The position numbers and the translations under genes were made by a program. Shown here piece after piece: positions 44,032 to 62,980 of a stretch of 64,000 bases of DNA. The stretch is taken from the NCBI RefSeq assembly GCF_030144855.1, contig NC_082710.1:149482001-149546000 (forward strand), in the 5' to 3' direction. The first letter of the stretch is position 1. The number at the start of each line of letters is the position of its first letter. Under the pieces are notes generated by a model. It saw only the letters and a list, made by a program, of their open reading frames with translations, was not told the DNA's origin and did not search any database. The stretch is from Hypanus sabinus (lineage: Eukaryota).

Positions 44032-44097
44032 CTACCTAATCTGGCAGGGAACTGCCGATCATCAGGAGTGCATAGGTTCCTGGGCCAGTCGATCCCA
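44032..44097 (+). pseudogene. U1 snRNA 5' fragment (nt ~1-65) inside a satellite monomer (representative best copy; a version is present in essentially every monomer)
   Basis: 44041-44097 CTGGCAGGGAACTGCCGATCATCAGGAGTGCATAGGTTCCTGGGCCAGTCGATCCCA aligns ungapped to U1 nt 9-65 at 60654-60710 with 45/57 identities (hand count). Confidence 0.88.
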
Positions 44098-44168
44098 GCG
44101 CTTCTCGGCCTTTTGGCTGAGATCAGGCGTTCTTATTAGAGCGCAGCTATAACAAGTGGTCTTATTAG
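44097..44168 (+). pseudogene. U2 snRNA 5' fragment (nt 1-34 joined to 44-52) plus a second partial copy, inside a satellite monomer (representative copy)
   Basis: AGCGCTTCTCGGCCTTTTGGCTGAGATCAGGCGT matches the vertebrate U2 5' end ATCGCTTCTCGGCCTTTTGGCTAAGATCAAGTGT at 30/34. It continues TCTTAT(T/C)AG (U2 TCTTATCAG). CAAGTG(T/G)TCTTATTAG repeats 29 bp later. Confidence 0.88.
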
Positions 44169-47100
44169 GACACAGAGAGGAAGCGACGCAGAGCGGCGAT
44201 GGAAGAAAGGATCGGTGAAAGAGGCGGGGAGAGCAGTGCTTCGATTTGAGGGACTGGAAACCAAAACGCTGTAAGGGTAGGTGTCCGAGATTACAAAACG
44301 TTCCTTGGACAACAGGTAATGAAGTTAGCCAATATCGCCCTCACCCTGCGACACCTCTTCCTTTGTGGATGCATGTGGTTGAGTGTGGTTCCCAGGTTCT
44401 CTTAGCCCAAAAAATACAGTTCATTCAGAAATATTGGAAAGGAAAGTAATTTAGAAAAACCATTTGTTTACTCTGATGTTCTGTCTGTCTATTAACGCCA
44501 GTGAGTGCAAAGTGTGCTGTGTCGCGGAATTTTCGTTGGCTAAATCGCATTAAAATGCACAAACGTATTGAAAGAAGACAAAGGTAGGTACTATCTAATT
44601 TGGCAGCGAGCTGTCAATCATCAGGAGTGCATAGATTTCTGGGCCAGTCGATCCCAGCGCTTCTCGGCCTTTTGGCTGACATCAGGCGTTCTTATTAGAG
44701 CAGAGCTATGACAAGTGTTCTTATTAGGACACAGAGAGGAAGCGGCGATGGAAAAAAGGATCGGTGAAAGAGTCGGGGAGAGCAGTGCTTCGATTTGAGG
44801 GACTGGAAACCAAAACGCTGTAAGGGTAGGTGTCCGAGATTAGACAACGTTCCTTGGAGAACGGGTAATTAAGGTACCCAATGTCGCCCTCACCCTGAGA
44901 CACCTCTTCCTTTGTGGATGCATGAGTTATGGTGTGAATCGCAGGTTTTTCTAGCCACAAAATACACTTTATTCAGAAATATTTCAAAATAAAGTTATTT
45001 ACAAAGACCATTAGTAGACCCTGATGCTCTGTCTGGTTGTGTCCTCCAGTTAGCGCAAAGGGTGTTTTACAGCGGCGTTTTTTTTTTAGCTAAATCGCCT
45101 TAAAATGCGCTAATGTATTGAATGAAATCAAAGGTTCGTGCGAAATGACCGGGCAGGGAGCAATCAGAGGTGAAGAGGGCAAAGGTTCGCGGAACATGTG
45201 ATCTCAGCTCTTCACAGCCTATTGGCTGAGATCAGGCGTTCTTATCAGAGCGCAGCTACACCAAGTCTTCATTTAGGATTGAGAACGAAAGCGACGCAGG
45301 GCGGTGATGGATGAGGATGGCCGGACAGATCAGCAGATCGGTGATGAAGGCCGAGGAGTGCAGCGCTACTACTTGCGGGCTGGAAATACAGAACGCAGTC
45401 GGATTGAGCGTCCGACTTAAGCAGGTACTCTGGTCAACGGAGATAATACGTCCCCAATATCGCCCTCTCTCTGAGAGACGACTTCCTATGCGATTCCATG
45501 AGGTTTTGTGTTGACCACAGAGATTTTACCCCAAAAAAAGTCCGATCTTCAAAAATATTCCAAATTAATGTTATTTACAAAAACCATTAGTTGACACTCA
45601 TGCACTGTCTGGTTGTCTGTCACCTCCACTGAGCGCAAACAGTGCATGACAGCGGCATTTTTTTGCTAAATCACATTAAAATGCGCTGAAATACAGAATG
45701 AAGGCAAGGATAGTACTTCCGAAGCAGGCAGGGCATCTAACTGTGGTAATGAGGGCAAAGGTTCACGGACCAGGCGACCTCAGCATTTCTCGGCCTTTTG
45801 GCTGAGATCAGGCGTTCTTCTCAGAGCGCAGCTATAACAAGTGTTCTTATTAGGACACAGAAAGAATGCGACGCAGGGCAGCGATGGAAAGAAGGATCGG
45901 TGAAGAAGGCGGTGAGAGCAGGGCTTCGACTTGCCGGGCTGGAATGCAGAACGCTGTATGATGGTGTCCGAGGTTAGAAAACGTACCCAGGAGAAAGTGT
46001 AATACACGTACCCAATGTCACCCTCACATTGAGAGACCTCTTCCAATGTGGCTGCATAATGTTGTATGTGTATCCCAGGTTCTTTTCGCCCAAAACTACA
46101 CTTTATTCAGAGATACCTCAAAATAAATTTATTTACAAAAACCATTTGTTTACTCTGATGCTCCGTCTGCTTGTGACATCTAATGAGCGCAAAGTGTGCT
46201 GTGCAGCGGCATTTTGTTTGGCTAAATCGATTTCAAATACACTAACGTATTGAAATAAAGCAAAGATTGGTGCAAACTAATCTGGCAGGGAGCTGTCAAT
46301 CATCAGGAGTGCATGGGGTCCTGGGCCAGTCGATCTTAGCCCTTCTCGACATTTTGGCTGAGATCAGGCGTTCTTATTAGAGCAGAGCTATGCCAAGTGT
46401 CCTTATTAGGACACAGAGAGGAAGCGAGCCAGAGCGGCGATGGAAGAAAGGATCGTTGAAAGAGGCGGGGAGTGCAGTGCTTCGACTTGTGGGACTGGAA
46501 ACCAAAGCGCTGTAAGGGTAGGTGTCCTAGATTAGAAAACGTTCCTTGGAGAACGGGTAATTAAGGTACCCAATGTCGCCCTCACACTGGGAGACCACTT
46601 CCTTTGCGGATGCATCAGTTTTGGTGTGAATCGCAGGTTTTTCTAGCCACAAAATACACTTTATGCAGAAATATTTCAAAATAAATTATTTACAAAGACC
46701 ATTAGTAGACCCTGATGCTCTGTCTGGTTGTGTCCAGTTAGCGCAAAGGGTGTTTTACAGCGGCGTTTTCTTTGGCTAAATCGCCTTAAAATGCGCTAAT
46801 GCATTGGATGAAATCAAAGGTTCCTACGAACAGACCGGAGAGGGAGCTATCAGAGGTGAAAAGGGCAAAGGCTCCCGGAACAGGCGATCCCAGCGTTTCT
46901 CGGCCTTTTGGCTGAGATCAGGCGTTCTTCTTAGAGCGCAGCTGTAACAAGTGTTCTTATTAGGACACAGAAAGAATGCGACGCAGGGCGGCGATGGAAA
47001 GAAGGATCGGTGAAGAAGGCGGTGAGAGCAGGGCTTCGACTTGCCGGGCTGGATTGCGGAACGTTGTATGACAGAGTGTCCGAGGTCAGAAAACGTACAT

Positions 47101-49613
47101 AGGAGAACGTGGAGTAAATGTAACCAATGTCTCCCTCACCTTGAGAGACCTCTTCCTATGTGGCTGCATCAGGTTGTGTGTGGATCCCAGGTTCTCTTAG
47201 CCCAAAAATACACTTTCTTCTGAAATATTTCAAAATAAATTAATTTACAACCACCATTTGTTTACTCTCATGCTCTGTCTGTTTGTGACCTCCAGTGAGC
47301 GCAAAGTGTGCTGTGCAGCGGCATTTTGTTTGGCGAAATCGCATTAAAATGCACTAACGTATTGAAAGAAAGCAAAGGTTGGTACTAACTAATCTGGCAG
47401 GGAGCTGTCAATCATCAGGATTGCATGGGTTCCTGAGCCAGTCGATCCCAGCGCTTCTCGTACTTTTGTCCGAGATCAGGCGTTCTTATTAGAGCGCAGC
47501 TATAACGAGTGTTCTTATTCGGACACTGAGAGAGAACGACGCAGAACGGCGATGGAAAAAGTATCGGTAAAGAAGGCCGGGAGGGCAGTGCTTCGACTTG
47601 CGGGACTGGAAACCACAGCGCTGTAAGGCCAGGTGTCCGAGGTTAGACAACGTTCCTTGGACAACGGGTAATAAAGGTACTCAATGTTGCCCTTTACCCT
47701 GAGAGACCTCTTCCTTTGTGGATGCATCAGTTTTGGTGTGAATTGCCGGTTTGTTTTTAGCCACAAAAGACGCTTTATTCAGAAATAATTCAGTATAAAG
47801 TTATTTACAAAGACCATTAGTTGACTCTGATGCTCTGTCTGTCTGTGTCCTCCAGTTAGCGCAAAGGGTGTTTCACAGCGTCATTTTTATTTTTGGCTGA
47901 ATCGCTTTAAAATGCGCTAATATATTGAATGAAATCAAAGGTTCGTGCAAAATGACCGGGCAGGGAGCAATCAGAGGTGAAAAGGCAAAGGTTCGCGGAC
48001 CATGTGATCTCAGCTCTTCACAGCCTATTGGCTGAGATCAGGCGTTCTTATCAGAACGCAGCTATACCAAGTGTTCATTTAGGATTGAGAACGAAAGCGA
48101 CGCAGCTTGGTGATGGAAAAGAGGATGGCGGGACAGATCCGCGGATCGGTGATGAAGGCCGGGGAGTGCAGCGCTACGTCTTAAGGGGCAGGAATAGAGA
48201 ACGCAGTCAGATTGAGCGTCCGAGGTTAGTTGGTGTCCCGGACAAGGGAGATGATATGTCCCGAATGCCGGCCTCTCCCTGAGAGACGACTTCCTATGTG
48301 ACTGCATCAGGTTTTGTGTTGACCGCAGATCTTTTAGCCCGAAAAGTGTCCTATCTTTAGAAATATTCCAAATTAATGATATTTACAAAAACCATTATTT
48401 GACACTCATGCACTGTCTGGTTGTCTGTCACCTCCAATTAGCGCAAACAGTGCATGACCGCGGCATTCTTTTGCTAAATCGATTTATAATGCGCTAAAAT
48501 ACATAACGAAGGCAAAGATCGTATTACCTAACGAGGCAGGGCGCTATCAGTGGTCAGGATGCAAAGGTTAGCTGACCAGGCGATCTCAGCGTTTCTCGGC
48601 CTTTTGGATGAGATCAGGCGTTCTTCTCAGAGCGCAGCTATAACAAGTGTTCTTATTAGGACACAGAAAGAATGCGACGCAGGGCGACGATGGAAAGAAG
48701 GCGGTGAGAGCAGTGCTTCGACTCGCCGGGCTGGAATGCAGAACGCTGTATGATGGTGTCCGAGGTTAGAAGCCGGTACCCTGGACAGTGGGAAAACTCG
48801 TCCCCAATGTCGCCCTCACGCGGTGGGAAGGCTTCGTATGTGTCTGCATCAGGTTTCGTGTGAATCCCACAGTTTTTTTTTCAAAATAATTTACTTTATT
48901 GAGAAGTATTCCAAAGTAATATTATTTACCAAAACCATTAGTTGACTCTCAGTCCTTATCTGTTTAGTACTAAAATTCTCATGCTCTGTTTCTCTGTTTG
49001 TGACCCCCAATTAGCGCATTACAGCGGCACTTATATTTGGCTAAAATGCGCTAACTTCCAGAATGCCGGCAAAGGTCAGGGTTATATACGTATAAAACTA
49101 TTTATTCACCAAAATCAACAGCTCCGTTTTCACCTGAGGGCCGATCCGCCATCATGGAAATCGGTCCGCCACACCACTACGCATGCGCACGGCCAGCCTC
49201 AGCAGCTGCCCCAAGCGGAGCCAAAGGGCAGGGCAGTTCTATTTTGACTCCCTCCAGGAGTGCACCAACGGGTCACCCCGTTGTCTACTTCACAATAAAG
49301 ATGTTTGCAATAAATTATTCGTTGACTCTCAAACCCCTAGTCAGGAATAAAACCTATTTACAATTAAACTCTTTACAACAAAACAAGGCGTTGACTCTCA
49401 TTGCTTTACAGTCTTGTGGCTGTATAATGAGCAAATCTGACCTGGATTGTAATCACTTGGGAGCAAGTGACTATTATAAAGGTTGCAGCCACTCCTGTGG
49501 CACTATGTTGATTCATCTATCCACACCGCTGATGAGGGGTATACTCCTCACCATCCGACCCCTCCCACCCCCGGGGTTGACGAACCCTAAACTGGACCTT
49601 CCGCAATGGGCCT

Positions 49614-49692
49614 TGGTACACAAAACGCTGGTGGAAAGCCGCAGGCCAGGCAGCATAGGAAGAGTCGACGTTTCGGGCCGAGACCTTTCGAC
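49614..49692 (-). mobile_element. Penelope-associated repeat fragment with truncated minimal hammerhead-like motif
   Basis: The minus strand reads CGAAAGGTCTCGGCCCGAAACGTCGACTCTTCCTATGCTGCCTGGCCTGC, the same family as 54,222-54,325. Confidence 0.55.
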
Positions 49693-50950
49693 ATAACGGA
49701 TTGTTGTCGGTTCAAGGCGGAGGATTTCGCCGGTTGCTATGACGTCACCACCCGGCATGCCGCAGGCGGGCAGAAAGTGCAACAGTATTTAATCGAGGAG
49801 AGGAGCGAGGCGCCGCTGTCGCTACTTCAAGCACAACCCCTCTTCGCCGAGGCAACACAGCAAGAATGAACGGTTACGGTACAAATGCTCAACCCCTATG
49901 TACCTGTCGTTCACGTCCTCACGTTCCGAGCGCGGTATGTGGAGAGCGTGGGAATTGTGTGAACGTCAACGACAATCTAGGAATATGGACCAGTGAACTC
50001 CAAGTCAGGGTGAAGCTGAGGGTGGACTCCAGCAGCTTTGTCATCCACGCACCCTCAGTCTTCGCAATCGGAGGGAACCATCCCCCTTGCAGAACACACA
50101 GGACCCACCACGACGAGGAGGAGTCCACGGAAGAGGGGGGAGCCGAGGGGTAAGAAGGAGCATGGAGCGTGGTTGCCAAACGCAAAAAGCCCCAGAAGGC
50201 TCCTCCAAGAAGACAGCCGGCGGAGAAAGCGGAGAACCCAAAGAAAAGGGCCGTGGAATCTAATACATCCTCTGGTCACCTCTCCACTTCGGCAGAGGAA
50301 GACGGTGGGCAACAGTCGAGAGAACTGTGAAAGTGCTGGCCACCCCCCAAATACAGGAGGTGGAGATCAGCAGAGCCCCTCAGCTCCGGGAAACCGGGAG
50401 CAGTATCGCATCTGGGGCAGCCCCAGGAATCCCTCCGCGTTCAGAGCCCGCACTGCCTCTCCCTAGCGAGGACTACCCGCAGTCCCTGAGCCCACAGCTG
50501 GGGGCAAGACATCACCCAGACGGTGGCATGAGGGGTCAGGAGCGCGAAGGGGAGGACGAGGGTCTGTAAAGGATGACGGACCTTAAACCAGCGACCTTAA
50601 ACGTTCTCATCTGCGTCAGCGCGCTCCAGTACTTGAACACTGTGAATGCCGACGTGACCTTCCTCCAAGTGTGCAGTGTGCCGTGCGGAGAGAGCGGCTC
50701 CCGCCGCTGCTGGTGACGGCCCGGCCGGTCGTTCTGGCCGGAGACTTCAACTGCACCATTGATGCGGCTGGACGATCCGGCAGCGCCGACGGCAGGCTGG
50801 ACAGTACCTCCAGACTCCTGAATGGACACGGTGAAGACAGCCAGGCTGCGCGACGCCTTTGGCGACCCCACAGGTGGAGCGCAGCCGCAAGCCACCTGGA
50901 CACGACCGGACCGCTCAGCCCGCTCCCGGATCGACTTCCTCTTGACTAAC
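49693..50950 (+). mobile_element. Degenerate Tx1-clade non-LTR retrotransposon: ORF1 and start of ORF2 (APE endonuclease)
   Basis: Frameshifted ORF1-like peptides: DCCRFKAEDFAGCYDVT..APLSLL, VTVQMLNPYVPVVHVLTF, LGIWTSELQVRVKLRVD..HAPSVFAIGG. APE-like peptides: RPVVLAGDFNCTID, TWTRPDRSARSRIDFLL. Confidence 0.85.
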
Positions 50951-50974
50951 TGGTCATTAGAAATTAAAGGGAAC

Positions 50975-51560
50975 ATTGCAGTGCAGGTCCTGTGATCCAA
51001 TTCCTTCCCTACTATTGAGTGAATTTATCCTGGAGCAAAGATCCCCACTGTTCAGAGTGAACGTTGTGGGAAGGTGAGGCTGGAAGCAACATCCAAGCAA
51101 GAAGAGTCTGGGGCGGTTGTAGTTAAGTGAGACTGTCGGAGACAAGATAGGCCTGGGTGAGTGAGGTAGTGTGAGCTCAGGCCAGACAAGTGAGGCATCT
51201 GTAATGAGACTTTTACAGAAAGGACTTCCTTTTGCCCCTTTACACAACAAGGACGGAGAAGACAGGTATAATGGAAGGTTGTGAAACTAAAGGACAATTG
51301 TCTTTACTAACCAAGATAACATCGGTTGTCAGCTTGAAGTTCGACTGACTTTTAACACCTCCGTGACAGTTAAGGAATTCAAACAGATGCAATGTATTCA
51401 ATGATTGACATCAGTAACTGACAAGCCAATTCTATGTACCATTTGCAGTTTCTTGCCCCGCCTTCAGAACAGTGTGGGTGACAAGGGCCATGCTTGTGCA
51501 CTAGTAAAATAAAAGCAATGTTTGAGTTGTGAGAGTTTGTGCTCTGTGCCCAGTTATTTT
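50975..51560 (+). mobile_element. Possible LTR-like interspersed repeat interrupting the Tx1 copy
   Basis: Abrupt loss of Tx1 coding similarity. AATAAA (~51,508) is followed by a GT-rich tract. No family recognised. Confidence 0.25.
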
Positions 51561-51654
51561 TGTTATATTAGTTATTTATTTTGATATTGGCGACGACATC
51601 AGAATCAGGACATGGTTTAATATTGTGAAATTTGTTGATTCCAATTCTGGTTCT

Positions 51655-51790
51655 GAAAGATCCCCACCATCCTGACTGCACTCTCATCTCACTACGACCA
51701 TCGGGTAAGAGGTACAGTAGCCTTAGGTTCCTCACTACCAGGTTCAAGAAGAGTTCCTACCCGATAACCATCAGGCTCCCGAACCAGCTT
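51655..51790 (+). mobile_element. Rex1/Babar-type LINE 3' ORF fragment
   Basis: Translates to KDPHHPDCTLISLRPSGKRYSSLRFLTTRFKKSSYPITIRL, matching the typical Rex1 C-terminal 'LPSGRRYR..TTR..NSF.P' motif. Confidence 0.75.
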
Positions 51791-52026
51791 TGATAAATTC
51801 ACCCAGCTGGGCCTGCAACTCACAGACTCACTTCCACAGACACGATGCAAATCAGGTTCTCAATATTATTTTTTTTAATTGCACAATTTGTCTGGAGGAA
51901 GGTGAAATAGCCTCTGCAGCGTTTCATCCCCAGCAGCTGTGTGACAGAGGACCCTCTGATCTCTGTTCCCAGAGACAAACACCATGCGCTCATGGTATTG
52001 GAGTATAAAAGTTGCATTATTTGCTG

Positions 52027-52607
52027 TGTAACCAAAAGAGATGTAGTCAGCTTTGAAACTTGCTATTTGCTATGCATGTATCCAAAATGAAATCCTAGGA
52101 ATGTAAAAGACAATGGTGTGTTAGAGGAAGCTAAGAGATGTAAATTATGTAATCTGAGTTTGCTATTTGCTATGCATGTACCCAATTTAGCAGGAGAATG
52201 AAATATTAAGAATGTAAAAGTCAATGGTGTGTTAATGAGAGGTAGCTAAGAGGTGTAGATAAAAGAGATGTAGTCAGGATTAAGTCACGAAGTATTAAGA
52301 ATGTAAACTTGCTATTTGCTAGAGAATGAAATCTTAGGAATGTAAAAGACAATGGTGTGTTAATGAGAGGCAGCGAAGAGATGTAGATTAGAACATGATT
52401 AAGTCAATGGGTAAAAATAATAGTGACAAGATGTACGTGTGGTACGTGTGAAACTGGACCAGGAGATTGCTATAAAAAATGCCGTGTCCGAGGATCAGCG
52501 ACTAGCTCAATGACTGTCTCAGCTTTGATTTGCAAATTAAAGTTTAACCCTTCTTGAAGAATCTTCTGCGTCTCCTGGTCATTTGTGAGGCACGAAAAAC
52601 CGCGACA
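52027..52607 (+). mobile_element. Probable LTR (TG...CA) with internal imperfect tandem repeats; retroelement leader-like sequence follows to ~53,010
   Basis: Three imperfect repeats of TTGCTATTTGCTA...GAATGTAAAAG.CAATGGTGTGTTA at 52,060-52,390, TATAAAAA at ~52,471, ATTAAA at ~52,536, and an end at ...CGCGACA. Confidence 0.45.
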
Positions 52608-53019
52608 ATGGCAGATCACCAACTCGCTGAAAGGCAAACTCTGTGACTGAGGTGCAGGACACAGGCACAGAGACTGAGCTGGGATGCTTGCGACAACGTG
52701 AACGTTGAGGAATCTTGACACGGAGCTCTGATATGGAGTCTTCACACGGAGACGGGGTTTTCATGGAATATCTTGAAACTGGAGCTGAACTTAGAACTAC
52801 CGGTTCTAAGCGGTCGGGAATCGAAATTACCACACGGGAGTAGACCAGAGGTTGTGACGCCGGGATTCTTACACTGCCATGCTTGATGGAGACCAGGTGC
52901 GCTCGCATTAAGCGAATTAGCAGTAAGTGGGAAATTAAGGATCGGAATCAAGGCATAATCAAAGGAGATTTGGGGCAAAATAGTGGATTAACAATCGGGA
53001 CCATGGCAAACTTTGGTCA

Positions 53020-53245
53020 CCCGAAACTTGTTGGTCTACCAGCACATCGCGATGTCCGTGGAGGAATGCTGCTGATTGGCTCAGTCCAGGCTGCAGGGTC
53101 CGTGCTGCGGGATGCCCTGAAGCTCAGCGCTGCCACCACAAAGGGTAAGTAGGGAATGTCCATGGAGTAGGGTTCCTCACCAACTGGAGAAAGAGGGGAT
53201 GAATAGGTAATTTTGTAGTTTTTTTTTAATAACATTTATTTTGTT
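53020..53245 (+). mobile_element. Tx1-clade ORF2 C-terminus and 3' end
   Basis: LLVYQHIAMSVEECC*LAQSRLQ..VLRDALKLSAATTK resembles the Tx1 ORF2 terminus. It is followed by a T-rich TTTTAATAACATTTATTTTG end like those at 58.4 and 62.98 kb. Confidence 0.75.
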
Positions 53246-53728
53246 TACATTTTTTCTTTTGCACATTGCTGGGCAGTCTTGTTTATTTTCTAGCTTTTCG
53301 CAAATTCTGTTGTATTTCCTCATTTTCCGGAAAATGCATGCCACCGTATCTCGTGGCTGCATACCATAGCGTATTAGATAGCACTGTAATCATGAATTGT
53401 TCTTCTTTTTACCGTATGAAACGCTGTGTTGCGTTAGTGAGCCTACTTCCACTTCTCTTCCAACACTGAAATGCCGCGTTCATTTCTGATGTTGTAATCC
53501 TCATTCAGATTTAACTTCTCTGATTTAGATGGAAGGAAATCACATTGTGTTCATATCAGTTCTGTGATGTTATAGTCACCGCTCCGGACGGCAGATCCTC
53601 AATCGGTTCGTTCCGTCAATGAATCCTCAATAGCTTGAGGCACCCCAAGAACCGGCTTGGCTGTGTCCTGGGGACAGAATCCGCGTCCGGATCCGTCCCA
53701 CGCCCGCAGTCGGTGAATCTGCTGTGCT

Positions 53729-53760
53729 GGGACACCTAGTGGCTGGTTTCAGAACTGCAG
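53729..53760 (-). promoter_or_regulatory. CTCF-like site with upstream (ZF9-11) motif
   Basis: Minus strand CTGCAGTTCTGAAACCAGCCACTAGGTGTCCC: TGCAG upstream module plus CCACTAGGTG core at the usual spacing. Confidence 0.65.
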
Positions 53761-53796
53761 GTGGCTGGTCGGAGACTGTTTCCCCGTAGGGCAGAT

Positions 53797-53804
53797 ATGC
53801 AAAT
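53797..53804 (+). promoter_or_regulatory. Octamer ATGCAAAT (distal sequence element of U1 copy 1), -179
   Basis: Perfect octamer at a DSE-like distance, with a counterpart upstream of U1 copy 2. Confidence 0.8.
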
Positions 53805-53914
53805 AAAACAGTGTGGAACGTTGAAGGGCTGTAATATTTTAAAGTAAAACTAAGATAAAGCATGAGCCACGTTTGTGTCTTTTTGCACCAGCTGAGCTGA
53901 GCGGAAATTGGTAG

Positions 53915-53936
53915 CTCTTGCTGAAGCTAAGGGGTG
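53915..53936 (+). promoter_or_regulatory. Putative proximal sequence element (PSE) of U1 copy 1, starting at -61
   Basis: CTCTTGCTGAAGCTAAGGGGTG aligns ungapped with GTCGTGTTGATGTTAAGGAGTG at the same -61 offset of copy 2. Confidence 0.6.
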
Positions 53937-53975
53937 ATGTATGTGTTTGGCTGGGTGTGCAAAGGGTCGTTAAGT

Positions 53976-54139
53976 ATGCTTACCTGGCAGGGAACCGTCG
54001 GTGATCAGGAGGGCGGAGGTTCCGGGACGAGGCTATCCCATTGCACTCCGGGTGTGCTGACGCCCGCGATGTCCCCAAATGCGGCATACTCGACTGGATA
54101 ATTTGTGTTAGTGGGGGACTGAGTTCGCGCTCTGTACTG
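53976..54139 (+). ncRNA. RNU1: U1 snRNA variant, full length (164 nt), degenerate (variant gene or young pseudogene)
   Basis: ATGCTTACCTGGCAG...GATCAGGAGG...ATTGCACTCC...AATTTGTG...GGGGGACTG. It carries A3G and mismatches in helix H, SL1, SL3 and SL4. Confidence 0.9.
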
Positions 54140-54221
54140 GTCTAATACACAAAAAAATAGAATGTAATGATTCTAAGTAAGCTGTATTTAATGTTTCCAA
54201 ATGCTGAATGACAGGGACACG

Positions 54222-54325
54222 AGTCCTATCGAAGGGTCTCGGCCCGAAACGTTGACTGTTCGTTTCCACGGATGCTGCCCGATCTGCTAGTTCCTCCAGC
54301 GTGTTGCTTTGACCCCAGCATCCGC
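54222..54325 (+). mobile_element. Penelope-associated repeat with degenerate minimal type I hammerhead
   Basis: AGTC-CTATCGA-AGGGTCTCGGCCC-GAAA-CG-TT-GACT: stem I (AGTC/GACT), stem II and GAAA are present, but the CUGANGA core is mutated. Confidence 0.6.
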
Positions 54326-54894
54326 CCAGTGATTTGTCTGGACACAGGAGTTCGTCGGGGTGTAAAAACCAGACTTAAGTTCTCTGTGGGCGGCAGGAAA
54401 ACTATCCTTCTTGTGTTCCTTGATCTAAATACAGAAGACCCTGTCACTTTGATCTGGACCACACCTTTCAGTAAGCTGGTCTATTAACTTGGTTCTATTA
54501 ACCTGGTAGCAGCCTCGGGTCTTCGAACATTAGACACCCTTGGCCAGGCGACCGAGCCAGGGTCGATCACTCGGTCTGTGGTTTTCCCCCATGGACCAAG
54601 ATAATGAAAGACGCGTGACTTGGATGGTTCGGGCATTTTAGACCACGTTCTTTAGGTCTATTTTGAACACGTGGGGAATGGGATGTTTCCGGAACCCTCT
54701 GCCCAGACCATCCGGCGGCATCCCTCATCCCCACGCCTCACCAACAGGCACAAAGACTCCGCCTGGCTGGCGGCGGGCGGGAGTTACCCTCCACCCTCCC
54801 ACCCCATCCCACTCTGCCCCAGTCAAATCCTTCCTGCATATCCGGAGCGTCATTTCACAATCTGTCTTCTTTAAAGTAGTTAATACTTTTCATA

Positions 54895-54990
54895 ATGCAT
54901 TGCTCCGTACTGCTGTCGCCCAAAACAAGACATTTGATGACATACGCCAGCGATATAAAATCTGCATCTGATTCTGATTCTGATTCGGAT
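54895..54990 (+). mobile_element. Rex1-type LINE 3' tail ending in (GATTCT)n
   Basis: Same tail as the Rex1 copy at 61,960-62,035. Confidence 0.6.
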
Positions 54991-55739
54991 CCGGATCAAG
55001 CAGTACAGGTGGGGGCGGGGGGAATGGGTGATTGTTCAGCAATTTGTAGACCTTCAGGGTCAGGCCGGCATCACGACCGAGTGAAGAGCGGAAATCTCCA
55101 GTATAAAGAAGAGAAGGGGAGGGGTGAGGCAAGGTAAGTGATGAACTGAGGGAAAGGTAAGGATTACGGGCAGGTTGAGCTAGGGGTGGAAGGGTTGGAG
55201 TCGGGGGGGGGGCAAAAAGATGGATAAAAAATACTGAGAAGGGTGGATTGAGGCAGAGGGAATGCAAGCACGAGGCGCAGAGAATCAGCCCATTTGGCCT
55301 TAAATCTGATCATCACTGATCCAATACAGACCTCACCGCCTCTGTTCCGGTTCCCTAGAGTCTCAAAACGCAGTTTGCTTCAAACCGTATTTATATCTTT
55401 ATATACCCCGAGTGGTCTCGTCTCCAAAGATCTCCAGAATCAGGAATTTCACCACACTCCGTGACGGAACTCATTTTTACATCACATCCCTCCGGCGACT
55501 GTCCACGCATTGAGGCTCTCCAACTAGTGTCCGATATGACAAAGATCTTGCACCAGAACCATTAACCGTTTCTCTTTCTGCAGAAGCTGACTGACCCCCT
55601 GAGTGTTCTCCCTTCATCTCCCTGTCAACAAAAGTCCAAGTCCGACCTTACTGTCCCTCTCCAAGAAAAACCTCCCGTCAATTGGATGGCACGCATTCCA
55701 CATCATGTCTTGTCTTCAGCAGTAACCCCAACATAAGCG

Positions 55740-56090
55740 GAAAACAAGCAGCTGGCACAGAACAGCAGTGGGAGACCCGTTTGTTCGAGATGGATTGCAA
55801 GCGACGTTCGGAAGGTGGTGTGGGCGCTCGCACTGGCCGAGGGCCCAGCGTGTGAGTGACAGAGAAGTTCAAGATGAGCTCCAAACCTGTGCACATTTGA
55901 CTGTTTAATTAGAATGGGCCCTTTTCTTTCTGTTATCCTTTACTAACCCTTTACTTAAGTAAGATCAATAAATGTGATACCTTTAACTGTGTGCAGTGTA
56001 CTGTCCGTTATTTCGTGGTACGAATTCGTAACAAAGTAGCAAATTACACAACATCCACACTGACAGTGGGGTTTGAGGTGAGCCCGAGCT
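55740..56090 (+). mobile_element. Possible LTR-like interspersed repeat
   Basis: Composition and AATAAA (~55,967) only. Family not identified. Confidence 0.25.
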
Positions 56091-56760
56091 GTCTCAATCT
56101 CCCACGTTTGGAAGGACCGGAGATTGTCTTCCCTAGACTTCCGCAGCCGAGGAAACCAGAGCGTTTCATAGATTTTCAGTATTGTGTTTAATTTGCACAA
56201 TTTGTCTTCTTTCGCACATTGGTTGTCAGTCTTTTTTCGTTTATTCTATTCTGTTTCATTGTTTTCCTGTAACTCCTGCAAGACACTGGATCCCATGGCA
56301 GTATATGATAATGTATACGCATTTTGATAAAAATTTTACTCTACATTACTGTAGGAAGCGTGTTGCCTTAGTGAGTCTACCCGCATTACTGTTCACAACA
56401 GTGCGCGAATGGTCGTGACCACTTAGTCCCGCATCAACCCTTATTTATCTTTAAGTCCTCAGCCCTAGGCGGAACAAAATCATAATGAATACATATTGAT
56501 ATCAATTCGTGATATTATGGTCACGGTTCCTCAATTTACCCATTCCTCTGACAAAACAGCACATGCAAATTGCCCGACCCCTTAATAAATTCTCTGTCTC
56601 TGTGACGCCGGCTATGAGCTCCGGAGAACGCCAGCTGAGACTGTCTGCTCACGGTGAAGGCCTGGTGGTCCGAGACGAAAAGGACGAAGCAGTGGCGGGG
56701 TTTGAAAGCGGGCAGGATCCCAGTCACAAGCCCGCAATCGATTAATTAAAATTGGTGATG

Positions 56761-56792
56761 GTGACACCTAGTGGCTGTTGTCAGAACTGCAG
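56761..56792 (-). promoter_or_regulatory. Orphan CTCF-like site paralogous to those upstream of the U1 genes
   Basis: Minus strand CTGCAGTTCTGACAACAGCCACTAGGTGTCAC. No octamer or U1 gene follows. Confidence 0.65.
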
Positions 56793-57109
56793 GTGCGTTG
56801 TCAGGCCCCACACAATGGTACAGTAATCCGGGTCAGTGGGCGCACCCGCAGGAATACGATTCCAGTCGATTTCAGACGGCCCAGGATAAATCCATGGAGT
56901 TAATCCGAGGGGCGGGGGTTCAGCTAGAGCTGGGGAGTCGGCTGTCGACAAAAACAGCAGAGTGTGGGCCGTCACACCAAGACATCGAGACCGTCCGGAG
57001 TCACAACGACTGACCGACACCGACATGCTCAGCGTTCTTCGCCCTCAGAGGAGAAACAAGAATAAAGGGGAGAGAGCAGAGCGGCTGCGATCCGAGAACG
57101 CGCCAGTGA

Positions 57110-57590
57110 AAAGGGTGCAGAGAGAGGCAGGATGCGCGGAAGAATCATGGAAACACGCCTCTCCGCCGTGGACCCAGCCTACACCTCGCTCCCTCGGTAA
57201 GGCAGCGAAACTAGCCAAAGACCCCACCCATTTCAGAATCCCCCCACCCCCTTTCCCATCGGGCAGATGATACAAAACCCTGCGAGACCGTACCTACCAC
57301 CAGGCTCAAGAATAGCTTCCATCCCACTGCTATACGAATATTTATTGTTTTCCCTGTAGGATAAGATGCCGTCCTGATCTCACAGTCTCCTTCGTCAGGA
57401 TCTTGCACCTTATTCTCTGCCTGCAGTGTACTTTCTCTACACTGGAACGTTTTCAGCAGCGCTTTGTTATTGCTTTAGCTTGTTTTACCTTGACGCCCTG
57501 TGTAATGTTCTCTATCAACAGTAAATAGGGCAAGTTTTCCAGTGCAGCTCGGTACGTGTGACAACATTAAACCAAGCCCAGTTCCAATTC
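57110..57590 (+). mobile_element. Rex1/Babar-type LINE 3' fragment
   Basis: KDPTH...FPSGR*YKTL..TTRLKNSFHPTAIR followed by a 3' UTR. Confidence 0.7.
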
Positions 57591-57749
57591 CACGCGCATG
57601 TGGCAACATGAAGACGAACAGGGCGACGAGCCCGGTGAAGCACGGTCAGATTGAACAAGTAGAGTGAAGCGAATGCCAGCCTCGTAGAGTCCCGAGGAAA
57701 GCGGGGAGGCGGCGGAAGATCCCGAGTGGATCTGCTAACCCGGTGCGGC

Positions 57750-58415
57750 TCAACGGAACCTAAGAAGGGAATGAGCAGAGTTCTCTGAGTCAAAAAGTAC
57801 CCTGATCTCCCCGGCTGATTCCAGGGACACATACCCAGACGAACACCAACTGTGCTGGAAGAACATCAACTCGGTGAAAGACGCCCTTTGAACTAACTGT
57901 AACTTACAGCACACTACGGGCCATTCGCTGTGCGATGTTTTGCCGATCTTATAACCTAGTCTGTGATCAATCTAACATTCCCCTCCTACAGAGCCCTTCA
58001 TATTGCCACCATCCACGTGCCTATCCAAAAGTTTCATAAATCTCCCTTCTGTCTGCCTCTACCACCACAGTGGACATCGTGGTTTTCCGGAACATCGACG
58101 TGATGGAGGAATGCTGCCGGCTGGCCGGCTGGCCGGCTGACACGTGGCGAGGGGACGCACTGACGCTCGGCGCAGACACCGAGCACCTCTAGGGTTTTCC
58201 ACGACTGGACAGGGAGGGACCGGCATGGGCGGGGGTTCCTGATTTACTGCAGTCGTGTACCTTGGTAGGTGACATACGGCAACAGTGACATTTCTTCTAC
58301 GAAATGTAATTGTGCACTGCATAACACATCGTGTGTGAACGTGAGCATGAAATGTTTGGGTTATCCTTCTAAATATTTATTTTTATTATGAATACGATTT
58401 ATTTTAGTTTAAAAA
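57750..58415 (+). mobile_element. Tx1-clade ORF2 3' fragment with a nested antisense CR1/SINE-tail insertion (~57,895-58,075)
   Basis: PGTH..CWKNINSVKDAL, then VFRNIDVMEECCRLA, RDALTLGA, and a T-rich 3' end. Confidence 0.75.
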
Positions 58416-58659
58416 TATCACACTTCAGGCAATCTCATCATGCCCTCCTTGGTCCCGAAGTTCCAGAACGGTGAACAGAGGGTGGGTGACGTGGGGCTAC
58501 AGGAGTGAGGATGCTGGACAATGGGAGAAGGTGGATGTGGGGTTCGAGAGACCGCACGGTAAATGGTAGCGCTACAGAGAGTTGTACAACAGAGAGACCG
58601 AGGAGGGCAGGCACATAATTCCCCGGCAGTGGTAACACAGGTAGGGAAAGCGGTAATGA

Positions 58660-58850
58660 AAGCACTCTGACTTTCTGTCAGGGTATTGGCGGCAGGAGTT
58701 GGGATGTCGTGTTACAACTACACAAGATGAGAGTGGTACATTTGGAGTCCAGCGCACAGAGCTGATCATCCAGCTACGGGGAGAATAGCAGTAAATTCGA
58801 AAGGGTGCAGATAAGATTCATGTCGCCGGTTCTGGAAGGCTTGAGTATAT
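58660..58850 (+). mobile_element. CR1-type LINE ORF2 fragment
   Basis: RSWDVVLQLHK...HLE...KFERVQIRF resembles CR1 'LYKTLVRPHLEY..LERVQ.RF'. Confidence 0.6.
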
Positions 58851-59004
58851 GAGAGGGCCGATGGGTCGGCTTCCCTTCCGAGATTCTTCTCTGCTTCTGA
58901 ACCGCTCTGAGCCGAGGATTTCCCGCCGGATCCTTCTTGCCTTGTCCAGGTCAATCGCTCACTTCCACCCCCAGACCCTTTTCCAGTCCCCTGGAAAATG
59001 GAGG

Positions 59005-59752
59005 TCGAGTTAAGATGGCGCTAAACGGCGACTCCTTTGCTTGCGTCTTCCAAAACAGCTCTATTCATCTTTTTGAGGACCCCGACCTGGAGTTCCACGC
59101 AGACCTCGGTTCCTGCGGGAATGGGACTCTTTCTCGAGGTTTCAGGACTGGCCGTTATCCGACATGCCGAAGATTCGGCCGAGAGTCTCGCTCGGATTAG
59201 GAAGCCCAAGATCTCGGGGCTCCGGGGGCGGGCGGATCGAGGGTCGGTGTCACGGCAGGAGACTCGCGTGTCGTCGGGAGGCCGGAAAATCTTTCGCTGT
59301 GGGCCCGAAGACCCGGGATCTTTGCGATCTTCGGACACAGAGCTCGAAAAAAAGCTACGAAACGGACTTCTACCATCGTAAGCCGGCGGGTTGTTGTTAT
59401 GTTCCCCGTTCGTTGAGAAAATGGGGGACACCTCCCTCTCCCTTACTAGGGAGGGAGAGAACCTGTGGTTTGTCGAATGTCGGATGAAATGCGATAGTCT
59501 CTGGGGTAACTGCAAGTCTGTGTCTTTGCTATTGTCTATCTCATGCTTGTGCTCGGTGGCGGTAACGATGCGCTTTCAGACTTAGACGGGAGGCGTTGCT
59601 CGCAGCCGCTTACGCGCGGGAGGGCTGAGCTGGGGGGAACTTTGGGGTTCTCAAGTTTAACTGTCATTCATTCTTTAGCGCACTTCTCTGTTTTCGTGGA
59701 TGTTTGCGAAGAAAAAGCATTTCAGGATGCATATTGTATGCTCTTCTCTGAA
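59005..59752 (+). mobile_element. Unclassified CpG-rich interspersed repeat (probably a non-autonomous retroelement)
   Basis: Sharp compositional block beginning AAGATGGCGC and ending in a LINE-like tail (AAAGCATTTCAGGATGCATATTGTATG). No coding motif. Confidence 0.35.
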
Positions 59753-60373
59753 CCCTCTCCTGTAGTGTGGCTGCCCTGCTTTTCAGGATTAGCGTTAGGA
59801 TCAGATTTATCATCACTCAATTTAACTCAGACGTAAGTAGTTTATTTATTGTGTAAAATGTTCGCTGTTCATAATAAAACGACATCTTCTGAGTCTCCAC
59901 ACCTTCTGGACTTGATCCAATGGAACTATTGTGACCCTCAACCCAATCTTCATCCTGTAAGCAACATTTTGTTGGTCTGGTCGGTTTCCCCTCATTACTG
60001 TACTATCACGAACAGTGCACATTCCCAGCTTTTGATAGAAAGGGGTCATAGTGGGTATTTTCATTAATTCTGTAACTTTATGGTCACTGTTTCTCAATTC
60101 CCTAATCGTCAAACCAACCCTTCCCAGTGACGCAACAATACATGGAAATAATCCGTTCCCTCATTCAATCCTCAATACCAGAGACACTCCAAGTCCTCGA
60201 GTTTGCCCCAGCCATCCTCCAGGAGCGCCCGCCGATATTGACTGCACACAGTGAGAGTCTGAGGCTTATAGTCAAGTAGAGGAAGAGCAGAGACGGGTAC
60301 CTGATAGCGGACAGGAACCACAGATCTCATCCCGGTCCCGGTCACATGCCGATGAATGAAACCCCGGGATAAT

Positions 60374-60405
60374 GTGACACCTAGCGGGCAACCTCAGAAC
60401 TGCAG
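60374..60405 (-). promoter_or_regulatory. CTCF-like site with upstream motif
   Basis: Minus strand CTGCAGTTCTGAGGTTGCCCGCTAGGTGTCAC. Confidence 0.6.
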
Positions 60406-60439
60406 GTGAGTTTTCGGGTCGTCTCCTATTATGGAATAT

Positions 60440-60447
60440 ATGCAAAT
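60440..60447 (+). promoter_or_regulatory. Octamer ATGCAAAT (DSE of U1 copy 2), -206
   Basis: Perfect octamer at the canonical DSE distance. Confidence 0.85.
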
Positions 60448-60584
60448 ACAAAATCGAGTGCAGTGCGAGATTCTTGAAAGCTGCAGTTATGTTTAAAGGC
60501 TACAAGATCTGAATGATAACACATAGAGCTAGATTAGATGAATTGTCTTTCGGAAATATAAATATAAAAGGTTTGAAATTCTGG

Positions 60585-60606
60585 GTCGTGTTGATGTTAA
60601 GGAGTG
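60585..60606 (+). promoter_or_regulatory. Putative PSE of U1 copy 2, starting at -61
   Basis: Position, and conservation with copy 1. Confidence 0.6.
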
Positions 60607-60645
60607 ATGTGCATGGCTGGCTGAGTGCGACAATGGTGTAAAAGC

Positions 60646-60809
60646 ATACTTACCTGGCAGGGAACTGTCGGTGATCAGGAAGGCCGAGGTTCCAGGACGA
60701 GGCTATCCCATTGCACTCCGGGTGTGCTGACGCCTGCGATGTCCCCAAATGCGGGATACTCGACTGCACAATTTGTGGTAGTGGGGGACTGCGTTCGCGC
60801 TTTCCCCTG
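60646..60809 (+). ncRNA. RNU1: U1 snRNA gene (164 nt), variant stem-loop I, probably functional
   Basis: Canonical ATACTTACCTG 5' end, U1A loop ATTGCACTCC, Sm site AATTTGTGG, and canonical SL4 GGGGACTGCGTTCGCGCTTTCCCCTG. Stems are preserved by compensatory changes. Confidence 0.96.
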
Positions 60810-62059: not shown

Positions 62060-62980
62060 GAGTGTGTCGCTTAGCAGACTGTCCAGACCATCTGGCTGAA
62101 TACCTCACCGAGACATCTCACCAACAGGCACCCAGGCCTTGTTGGCTGGTGGTTAGAGGGCCCCTCGCAGTCACATCCTTCCTGCATGCCCGGAGCACCT
62201 CTCCGACCGCGCGCTCTCCAGAGGGGCCTGTAGGAGGGTCGCTCTCCTCTCGGCAAAGTTTGCAAAGAGGGTGTGGAGAAAGAAGCAAGGACCTATGTCG
62301 CGGTTCATCCTGAACACGTGCGAAAGGGAGCTCTGATCTACGGGCTGATCCCAGGGACACATAGGGAGAGGGACACTAACTGTGCTGGAAGATCATCAAC
62401 TCAGTGAAAGACGCCCTTTGACTGATCGAACCTTAGGGCAAGCACCAGTACTACAGGCCCTTCGCTCGACGATGTTGTCCCAATGCTTTAAACTAGTCTA
62501 TGATCCATATAACCCCTCCCGCCTGCGTGGTCCTCCACATGTCTATCATGCACATGCCCAACTCCCTAACCTATCAGCCTCTAGCCCCACCCAGGGGAGG
62601 GCATTCCATGAAACTTGTTGGTTTTCCTGGACATCAAGATGATCGATGAAGACTGCCGATCAGTATATTCCAGGCTACGGTGTACGTGACGAGGGGACGC
62701 ACTGACGCTCGGCGCAGTGGCGCAAAAAGCGCTCGGTGGGGTAGGGCCGCACCTAGGGCTCTTCCAGTACTGGGCAGGGAGGAGTCGGCTGGGGCGAGGG
62801 AGCCCCTGGTTTATTGCAGCAGTCGACCACCCCAGCAGTCGACATGTGGAAATAGTGCTATTTGTTGGTAACTAAGCACTACGCAACAGAATATATGTGA
62901 ATATAAGAATGAAAATAAGCATTGCACATTTTATTCTTCTAAATATTTATTTTTATTATGAATAATATTTATTTTGTCTC
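62060..62980 (+). mobile_element. Tx1-clade ORF2 3' fragment (zf-RVT region to 3' end) with the same nested insertion as the 57.75-kb copy
   Basis: QTVQTIWLN..LTNRH, WLVVRGPLAVTSFLHAR, LIYGLIPGTH, CWKIINSVKDAL, RDALTLGA, and a T-rich end. Confidence 0.8.

Follow-up and report, generated by a model that had tools for sequence, protein, structure and literature searches.

The window analysed here is a stretch of 64,000 nucleotides (nt) of the stingray Hypanus sabinus (NC_082710.1, positions 149,482,001 to 149,546,000 of the forward strand), and it contains a satellite array of at least 49 kb lying beside an old, partly decayed cluster of U1 small nuclear RNA (snRNA) genes. Each monomer, about 556 bp long, starts with a piece of U1 (nt ~3–65) that is followed directly by the beginning of U2 snRNA and the 5' end of a Tx1/Keno-like long interspersed nuclear element (LINE), and at its right edge the array runs without interruption into the unamplified remainder of the same transposon nest. 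From the arrangement of these sequences we conclude that the array was very probably born in place at this locus. As to how the monomer acquired its U1 stump, we see an even chance that a U2-headed LINE inserted into a former local U1 gene at nt 65/66 and that the resulting junction was then amplified.

Organization of the satellite array

The array spans positions 1–49076 and runs off the left end of the window. It was found by a repeat search followed by nhmmer segmentation and clustering; Tandem Repeats Finder reported no array, its period limit of 500 being shorter than the monomer. With a profile built from five monomers, nhmmer resolves 88 head-to-tail monomers of 541–576 bp each, all on the plus strand, and to the right of the array the same profile matches only two short stretches of the window, which are the two U1 genes described below. 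The monomers cluster into three types, designated T1, T2 and T3. T1 is approximately 69% identical to both T2 and T3, and T2 and T3 are 78% identical to each other (a between-type divergence of 22–31%). These types are arranged in higher-order units of three or four monomers, T2-T3-T1 or T2-T3-T3-T1, and the copies of a unit are 95–100% alike. The last monomer, which marks the array end (48525–49076, plus strand; profile positions 2–552), is the most divergent. There is also an irregularity at 7798–8720, where one monomer is cut at profile position 521 and the next begins at position 156, forming an internal deletion junction.

The head of the monomer is a U1 stump joined to a U2-headed LINE

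The original prediction, made from inspection of the letters, held that the monomer heads derive from U1, that they are oriented as the local U1 genes are, and that they are of the local rather than the human type. All three statements are borne out. Monomer profile positions 2–66 match both U1 genes to the right of the array (copy 1, 53976–54141, and copy 2, 60646–60809, both on the plus strand) with E values of 1.6e-8 and 6.4e-8, and a blastn search with either gene finds all monomers, always on the same strand and in one register. The head is best seen at 44035–44097 (plus strand), where blastn (E 8.6e-9) and a three-way alignment identify U1 nt ~3–65. This head belongs to the most U1-like monomer (44033–44591, plus strand), situated near the array edge, which has 49–50 U1 matches of 65 where other monomers have 42–46 and in which ancestral U1 states survive that are gone from the homogenised copies of the interior.

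The consensus head of all monomers is 79.4% identical to copy 2 over 63 nt (E 3e-10) and 79.0% identical to copy 1 over 62 nt (E 9e-10), and its local alignment score of 61 compares with a maximum of 22 in 300 shuffles. Single types are only 67–73% identical to U1. That the consensus of all monomers lies nearer to U1 than any single type does is the pattern predicted by descent from a U1 sequence, and the U1 base is kept by at least one monomer lineage at 60 of the 68 aligned positions. For the question of local or human type, copy 2 and human U1 were compared by hand over nt 1–65; of the 18 positions at which these two differ, the satellite consensus is of the stingray state at 15 and of the human state at none.

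The right limit of the U1 piece is at nt 64–65. At the left, the first ~9 nt of the head (TAMCTAATC) fit U1 nt 1–9 and the next bases of a dispersed sequence that ends the monomer (piece Y, below) about equally well, so that this limit can be placed only within nt 1–10. The first duplication may have made use of the imperfect microhomology here. The heads give no match to the Rfam U1 family (RF00003) even at E ≤ 1, under a model with a gathering score of 69.5 bits for which a full-length match is required. U1 nt 66–164 were found neither in the monomer nor in the 5 kb between the array and copy 1, and a comparison that included the monomer tail and the DNA upstream of the U1 genes found no similarity in the monomer to the U1 promoter or flanks, that is to the proximal sequence element (PSE) or the distal sequence element (DSE).

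Three further candidates for U1 sequence were rejected. A second U1-like fragment in the monomer body (CGGTGAT..GAAGGCCGAGG) does not score above shuffles, an apparent older and degenerate U1 piece following the U2 head in the stingray monomer and in a Mobula locus (L001) is not significant, and two 12-mers at 51880 and 56194 that are identical to parts of the U1 Sm region, considered as remnants of the U1 3' part, have a non-U1 context in common and likewise do not rise above shuffles.

While correct as to U1, the original account of the head leaves out what comes next. Straight after U1 nt 65 the monomer reads A-G-CGCTTCTCGGCCTTTTGGCTGAGATCAGGCG, which corresponds to U2 snRNA, beginning at nt 1 and reaching to about nt 33, and in the monomer shown above this U2-derived head (nt 1–33), followed by TTCTTATTAG, occupies 44097–44141 on the plus strand and forms the 5' terminus of a Tx1/Keno-like LINE. 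The Rfam U2 matches in each monomer are weak (best E 0.028). Comparison with LINEs of the manta rays Mobula hypostoma and M. birostris accounts for the remainder of the monomer. In the profile, positions 55/65 to 143/264 correspond to the 5' ends of Mobula LINEs with their U2 heads (E 5.7e-17 to 4e-4), positions 264–391 match a sense piece within the second LINE open reading frame (ORF2; E down to 1.3e-18), positions 360–446 match the LINE 3' region in antisense, and positions 437–552 match the ~300-bp piece Y in M. birostris (E 1.7e-27). The order of the monomer is thus U1 stump, LINE 5' end (U2 head, 5' untranslated region and start of ORF1), ORF2 fragment, antisense LINE tail, and the first ~120 bp of Y. 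Because four Mobula copies begin at U2 nt 1 and then share the 5' untranslated region of the monomer, the LINE 5' end to which the U1 stump is joined is a complete one.

The right edge of the array and its probable birth in place

The sequence to the right of the last monomer continues the monomer's own components. Piece Y is found at 48958–49247 (plus strand), 77% identical to M. birostris L004:20103–20410 and collinear with it across the array end. The boundary of the repeat unit falls inside Y, the second half of which is present once, as the right flank; at internal monomer junctions the sequence quits in the middle of Y and proceeds with TGGCAGGG, which is U1 from nt 10 onward. Next is an antisense LINE 3' region (49289–49617, minus strand), collinear with M. 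hypostoma L002:15287–14881, such that the piece within the monomer (48870–48959) corresponds to L002:15287–15194 and the flank (49297–49614) to L002:15137–14881. Beyond this lies a degenerate LINE ORF1 (49721–50683, plus strand), recognised by the Pfam domain RBD_ZCCHC3_2nd (E 1.4e-7, 49743–50150) and by matches to batoid ORF1 proteins, and 72–80% identical to Mobula LINE ORF1. It restarts about 90 nt, in Mobula LINE coordinates, past the end of the LINE part of the monomer, and it probably belongs to the one LINE copy that also supplied the head and the ORF1 start of the monomer. A degenerate and internally deleted APE endonuclease remnant follows in frame pieces (50570–50992, plus strand; Pfam Exo_endo_phos, E 3e-4), with 91–93% identity to the Mobula copies, after which the LINE is truncated.

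As three sources (Y, the antisense LINE and ORF1) continue in register from the unit into a single-copy flank, the unit was very probably amplified at this locus, and the earlier suggestion of birth in situ stands, the right edge being collinear with the unamplified remainder of the source sequence. An origin of the array elsewhere, with the present locus secondary and both the seamless edge and the U1 neighbourhood incidental, we consider very unlikely; a transposed array would hardly be expected to have a flank that carries on Y, the antisense LINE and ORF1 in register, and the most divergent and ancestral-looking monomers are found at the right edge of the array. The locus therefore has both marks of a satellite derived from transposable elements, namely a monomer homologous to parts of such elements and a right edge collinear with unamplified, progenitor-like sequence.

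Two observations on these flanking sequences may be added. Within the APE remnant, the segment 50692–50943 is 90–93% identical to L001:26143–26385, L004:11493–11743 and L003:6626–6876, where the adjacent ORF1 reaches only 72–80%. Piece Y is common to the stingray and M. birostris, and an ATG-led stretch within it is conserved between the two.

Related LINEs in rays and skates

The ORF1 piece was searched against 1.84 billion representative proteins and the loci of the matches were then compared. Only six matches were obtained, all of them 'ZCCHC3-like' or unnamed gene models of rays and skates (Mobula hypostoma, M. birostris, Leucoraja and Rhinoraja), and all six have the two RNA-binding domains and zinc knuckles that characterise the ORF1 proteins of LINEs. 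The matches of the protein searches all came from rays, skates and sharks, with no Hypanus member of the family among them, and exact look-ups of one satellite ORF and one right-flank ORF gave no match. The M. hypostoma locus L002 has an ORF1 with two RNA-binding domains and CCHC knuckles, followed by an ORF2 with APE, RVT_1 and zf-RVT domains, and a homologue of this ORF2 (43% identity, E 1.5e-122) is named 'transposon TX1 149 kDa protein' by NCBI. The names given to the LINE in the protein atlas are generic reverse-transcriptase names only. The domain content and the name of this one homologue support the assignment of the LINE as Tx1-like.

All four Mobula LINE copies start exactly at U2 nt 1, with unrelated DNA upstream of each, and their U2 heads comprise nt 1–33 (L001), nt 1–52 (L003 and L004) and nt 1–29 (L002). 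The 3' part of U2 (nt 39 onward) was found neither at L002, L003 or L004 nor in the window, where only 5' stumps occur. The head of L002 is of particular relevance, since it too contains U1. In this nearly intact Tx1-like LINE (L002:9822–9884; Mobula hypostoma, OY992599.1), U2 nt 1–29 is followed by GATCACGAAGGCTGTTCTCCCAGGACGCGGCTATCCCAT and then by the LINE body, and the middle part matches nt 28–66 of U1 copy 2 with 82% identity over 39 nt (E 2e-5; score 50, shuffle maximum 40), U2 nt 1–29 and U1 nt ~30–66 being fused via a shared GATCA. The order of the stumps, U2 and then U1, is the reverse of that in the stingray head, and no intact U1 gene was detected at the L002 locus.

The U1 piece of L002 has the stem-loop II states of the stingray genes (GGACG.GGCTATCCCA, where human U1 has GGGCGAGGCTTATCCA), so that part of the apparent unusualness of the stingray U1 is common to these rays. 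In the stem-loop I strand L002 differs from the stingray type and the satellite is of the stingray type (AGGTTCC), from which it follows that the stingray and L002 captures of U1 were independent. Despite this, and despite the different architecture of the two heads, the U1 breakpoints lie within 1–2 nt of each other, at nt 66 in L002 and at nt 64–65 in the stingray. This recurrence suggests a preference, either for one site of insertion in U1 genes or for one site of template switching on U1 RNA.

Other loci with parts of this LINE family show rearrangements of their own. In M. hypostoma, L003:8788–20390 is a tandem repeat of 5161 bp containing LINE ORF1 and an ORF2 fragment, and is thus a second tandem amplification of parts of the family. 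In Rhinoraja longicauda, L006:10001–19833 holds a gene model that fuses the RNA-binding domain of LINE ORF1 to histone H3; at the same locus the ORF2 fragment of the stingray monomer occurs three times, approximately 2.8 kb apart, among histone genes, which places the LINE family inside a histone gene cluster as well.

The neighbouring U1 gene cluster

Both U1 genes in the window exceed the RF00003 gathering score. Copy 1 scores 113 bits and is degenerate, with several broken pairs and with alterations in the 5' end that pairs with the splice site, in the Sm site and in stem-loop IV. Copy 2 scores 155.7 bits, has a fully paired stem-loop I and is canonical-looking. The putative promoter of copy 1 (53731–53940, plus strand) contains a conserved 40-nt element, an octamer ATGCAAAT at -179 and a PSE-like box, and that of copy 2 (60376–60610, plus strand) contains the 40-nt element, the octamer ATGCAAAT at -206 and a PSE-like box. 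In both genes the latter box reads GYTAAGGRGTGATGT and is situated at about -50, and their flanks are alike from -60 and, patchily, further upstream. With its octamer and PSE, copy 2 looks from its sequence like an ordinary functional U1 gene of its lineage, and the original description of this U1 as an unusual variant is not supported.

Between the two genes there is an orphan U1 upstream region (56187–56802, plus strand) homologous to 53235–53770 (E 8e-23 and 9e-11). It corresponds to -740 to -205 of copy 1 and has the 40-nt element at 56763, but Rfam finds no U1 gene downstream of it, and it is a decayed third unit of the cluster. Two U1 genes and an upstream region without a gene together make up an old cluster that has partly decayed. 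A further segment of about 600 bp is present in three copies among the U1 units (57802–58405, 62333–62975 and 53023–53254) that are 65–70% alike; it is either a dispersed repeat or a component of the unit from which the cluster was originally built.

The cluster lies 4.9–11.6 kb beyond the end of the array, its strand being that of the satellite heads. With a few hundred U1 loci at most in a genome of a few Gb, we estimate that a random site has a probability of ~1e-4 to 1e-3 of being followed, within 6 kb and in the same orientation, by a U1 gene. It is therefore unlikely that the array lies 4.9 kb from a similarly oriented U1 cluster by chance.

Source of the U1 stump

The original prediction also tied the satellite to copy 1, the nearer gene, by way of a shared GAGGGC motif, and proposed that one unit of the U1 cluster seeded the array. 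The motif is present in types T1 and T2 (the third type has GAGTGC), and the G at U1 position 36 is present in all monomer types and in copy 1. The affinity that these features were taken to indicate is not there, the consensus identities being 79.0% to copy 1 and 79.4% to copy 2 and the mean numbers of U1 matches per type to the two copies lying within one match of each other. Nor is the head closer to copy 1 at the five positions of nt 1–65 that distinguish the genes: at positions 3 and 21 the satellite has the base of copy 2, at position 36 it has that of copy 1, and its bases at positions 40 and 49 are those of neither gene. Copy 2 holds the conserved states at all five, which means that the states of copy 1 arose privately in a gene under decay, and one of these five changes is found in the satellite too. 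With about one-fifth of the positions of the head changed, we estimate that one coincident A-to-G change among five sites would be expected about a third of the time, and a single shared change that is so readily obtained by chance cannot carry the argument for copy 1. By its sequence, then, neither surviving U1 gene is identified as the donor, and of the idea that the source locus is still visible at the array edge the part that concerns birth in place is sustained and the part that names a U1 copy is not.

The duplication or conversion of the DNA of a U1 unit, of the copy 1 lineage, into the progenitor monomer is in our view the least probable explanation of the head. The same orientation, the closeness of the genes and the G at position 36 agree with it, but the head is equally identical to both copies and the other four private states of copy 1 (at 3, 21, 40 and 49) are not in the satellite. 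Moreover, the homology ends within U1 nt 1–10 and again at nt 65, and a unit copied as DNA would be expected to bring with it some of the PSE, DSE and flanking similarity that both genes share, or of U1 nt 66–164, none of which is in the monomer. A more plausible explanation, although one to which we give distinctly less than an even chance, is that the head was made at the RNA level, by a template switch from the RNA of a U2-headed LINE to any U1 snRNA that added nt 1–65, the resulting copy having been inserted here and amplified in place. In this model closeness to the U1 genes would be coincidental, or would result from the element preferring the region or the target. Both stumps begin at or near nt 1 of their RNAs and are joined without intervening DNA, the recurrent addition of U1 and U2 pieces to the 5' ends of Tx1-Mar and SINEU elements is documented (PMC4494074), and L002 has a U1 piece in its LINE head, with no intact U1 gene detected at that locus. 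However, an element landing at random would almost never come to lie 5 kb upstream of a similarly oriented U1 cluster, so that the model needs the target or regional preference, and the switch positions in SINEU-2 vary by up to 22 nt where the two independent batoid heads end at nt 65 and nt 66.

Insertion of a U2-headed LINE into a former U1 gene of the local cluster is the reading that we put at an even chance, and in it the 556-bp unit would be the fossil of a transposon nest at the upstream edge of the old U1 cluster. A 5'-complete Tx1/Keno-like LINE, whose RNA would have started with U2 nt 1–33, would have been placed directly after U1 nt 65, most probably by insertion into a U1 gene of the cluster at nt 65/66, with the first 65 nt of the gene left behind as a stump. 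Other LINE fragments and Y would then have nested into the LINE, and the segment from the U1 stump to the middle of Y would have been duplicated in tandem by exchange at the DNA level. Expansion to at least 49 kb and differentiation into the three monomer types would have followed, and the unamplified remainder, consisting of what was left of Y and of the antisense LINE together with ORF1 and APE, would have been kept as the right flank. The local origin of the stump, as opposed to its addition at the RNA level, and the use of nt 65/66 as the insertion site are the conditional elements of this scheme.

Several points weigh against insertion into a local gene. There is no remnant of a U1 promoter or of U1 nt 66–164 beside the nest, the promoter-side left end being outside the window, and the start of the repeat unit within U1 nt 1–10 fits an RNA-level origin at least equally well. 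The U1 heads of crocodilian Tx1-Mar and SINEU elements have been ascribed to template switching and not to insertion into U1 genes (PMC4494074), and a 2015 review of elements that target snRNA genes reported no U1-targeting retrotransposon of the type lacking long terminal repeats (non-LTR) (PMC4640811). In addition, identity cannot separate a local U1 gene from other U1 genes of the genome as the donor, and the Tx1 assignment of the LINE is based on domain content and the name of a homologue, not on phylogeny.

Relation to known systems

The closest described system is that of the SINEU and Tx1-Mar elements of crocodilians, which similarly carry 5' heads made of U1 and/or U2 stumps. There the stumps were added recurrently and in either order to elements of the Tx1 clade related to Keno, and the U1 part is about 55–65 nt long; in SINEU-2 of crocodile the U1/U2 junction is at positions 53–58 of the element (PMC4494074). 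None of these snRNA-headed elements was found outside crocodilians at the time (Kojima 2015, PMC4494074). An snRNA-derived 5' region is present in the stingray monomer (U1 nt ~3–65 plus U2 nt 1–33), and U2 heads are present in four Mobula copies, one of them with U1 as well. Unlike the crocodilian elements, which are dispersed polyadenylated retroposons, the stingray sequence is a head-to-tail satellite in a batoid, its units have no poly(A) at their ends, and it lies beside real U1 genes.

Keno and Utopia insert into U2 genes at nt 38/39 (PMC4640811). The ray LINE resembles them in being of the APE type with a U2 5' stump, and the Mobula heads of nt 1–33 and nt 1–52 bracket the Keno and Utopia insertion site, but no examined copy is flanked by the 3' part of U2, and a U1 target is not described for the clade. 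With satellites born in place from transposable elements the stingray array has in common a monomer pieced together from element fragments and one edge that is seamless with the progenitor; the snRNA stumps and the higher-order structure of three types are additional to these.

Satellites are also known to arise from multicopy RNA genes, as with 5SHindIII and PcP190, both derived from 5S ribosomal DNA, which formed from units of gene plus spacer by DNA duplication. The stingray monomer is like them in containing a piece of a small RNA gene, but lacks U1 spacer or promoter, and its piece is attached to a LINE. The array is therefore a transposable element-derived satellite of a familiar kind, and what sets it apart is the snRNA stumps and a legible birth site beside U1 genes.

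The stingray locus and the manta-ray copies extend the occurrence of snRNA heads on Tx1-like LINEs to cartilaginous fish, and this indicates that the acquisition of such heads is a habit of the LINE clade that is either old or recurrent. The start of the satellite is unusually legible in that one edge joins the source, and the birth site, the boundaries of the unit and the order of events can be read from it. If the U1 stump does represent a gene of the adjacent cluster that was hit, the locus would record the capture of a target gene by a LINE and the subsequent formation of a satellite, and would also show how clusters of multicopy RNA genes decay. A broader proposal, which we offer tentatively and regard as unlikely on balance, is that a Tx1/Keno-like lineage of rays inserts into U1 genes (at nt 65/66) besides U2 genes and keeps the upstream stump as its head, and that one such hit in a U1 cluster seeded the satellite. 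If true, the lineage would be the first among non-LTR retrotransposons known to target U1, and the array would be the first satellite that could be traced back to an snRNA gene which its own parasite had disrupted.

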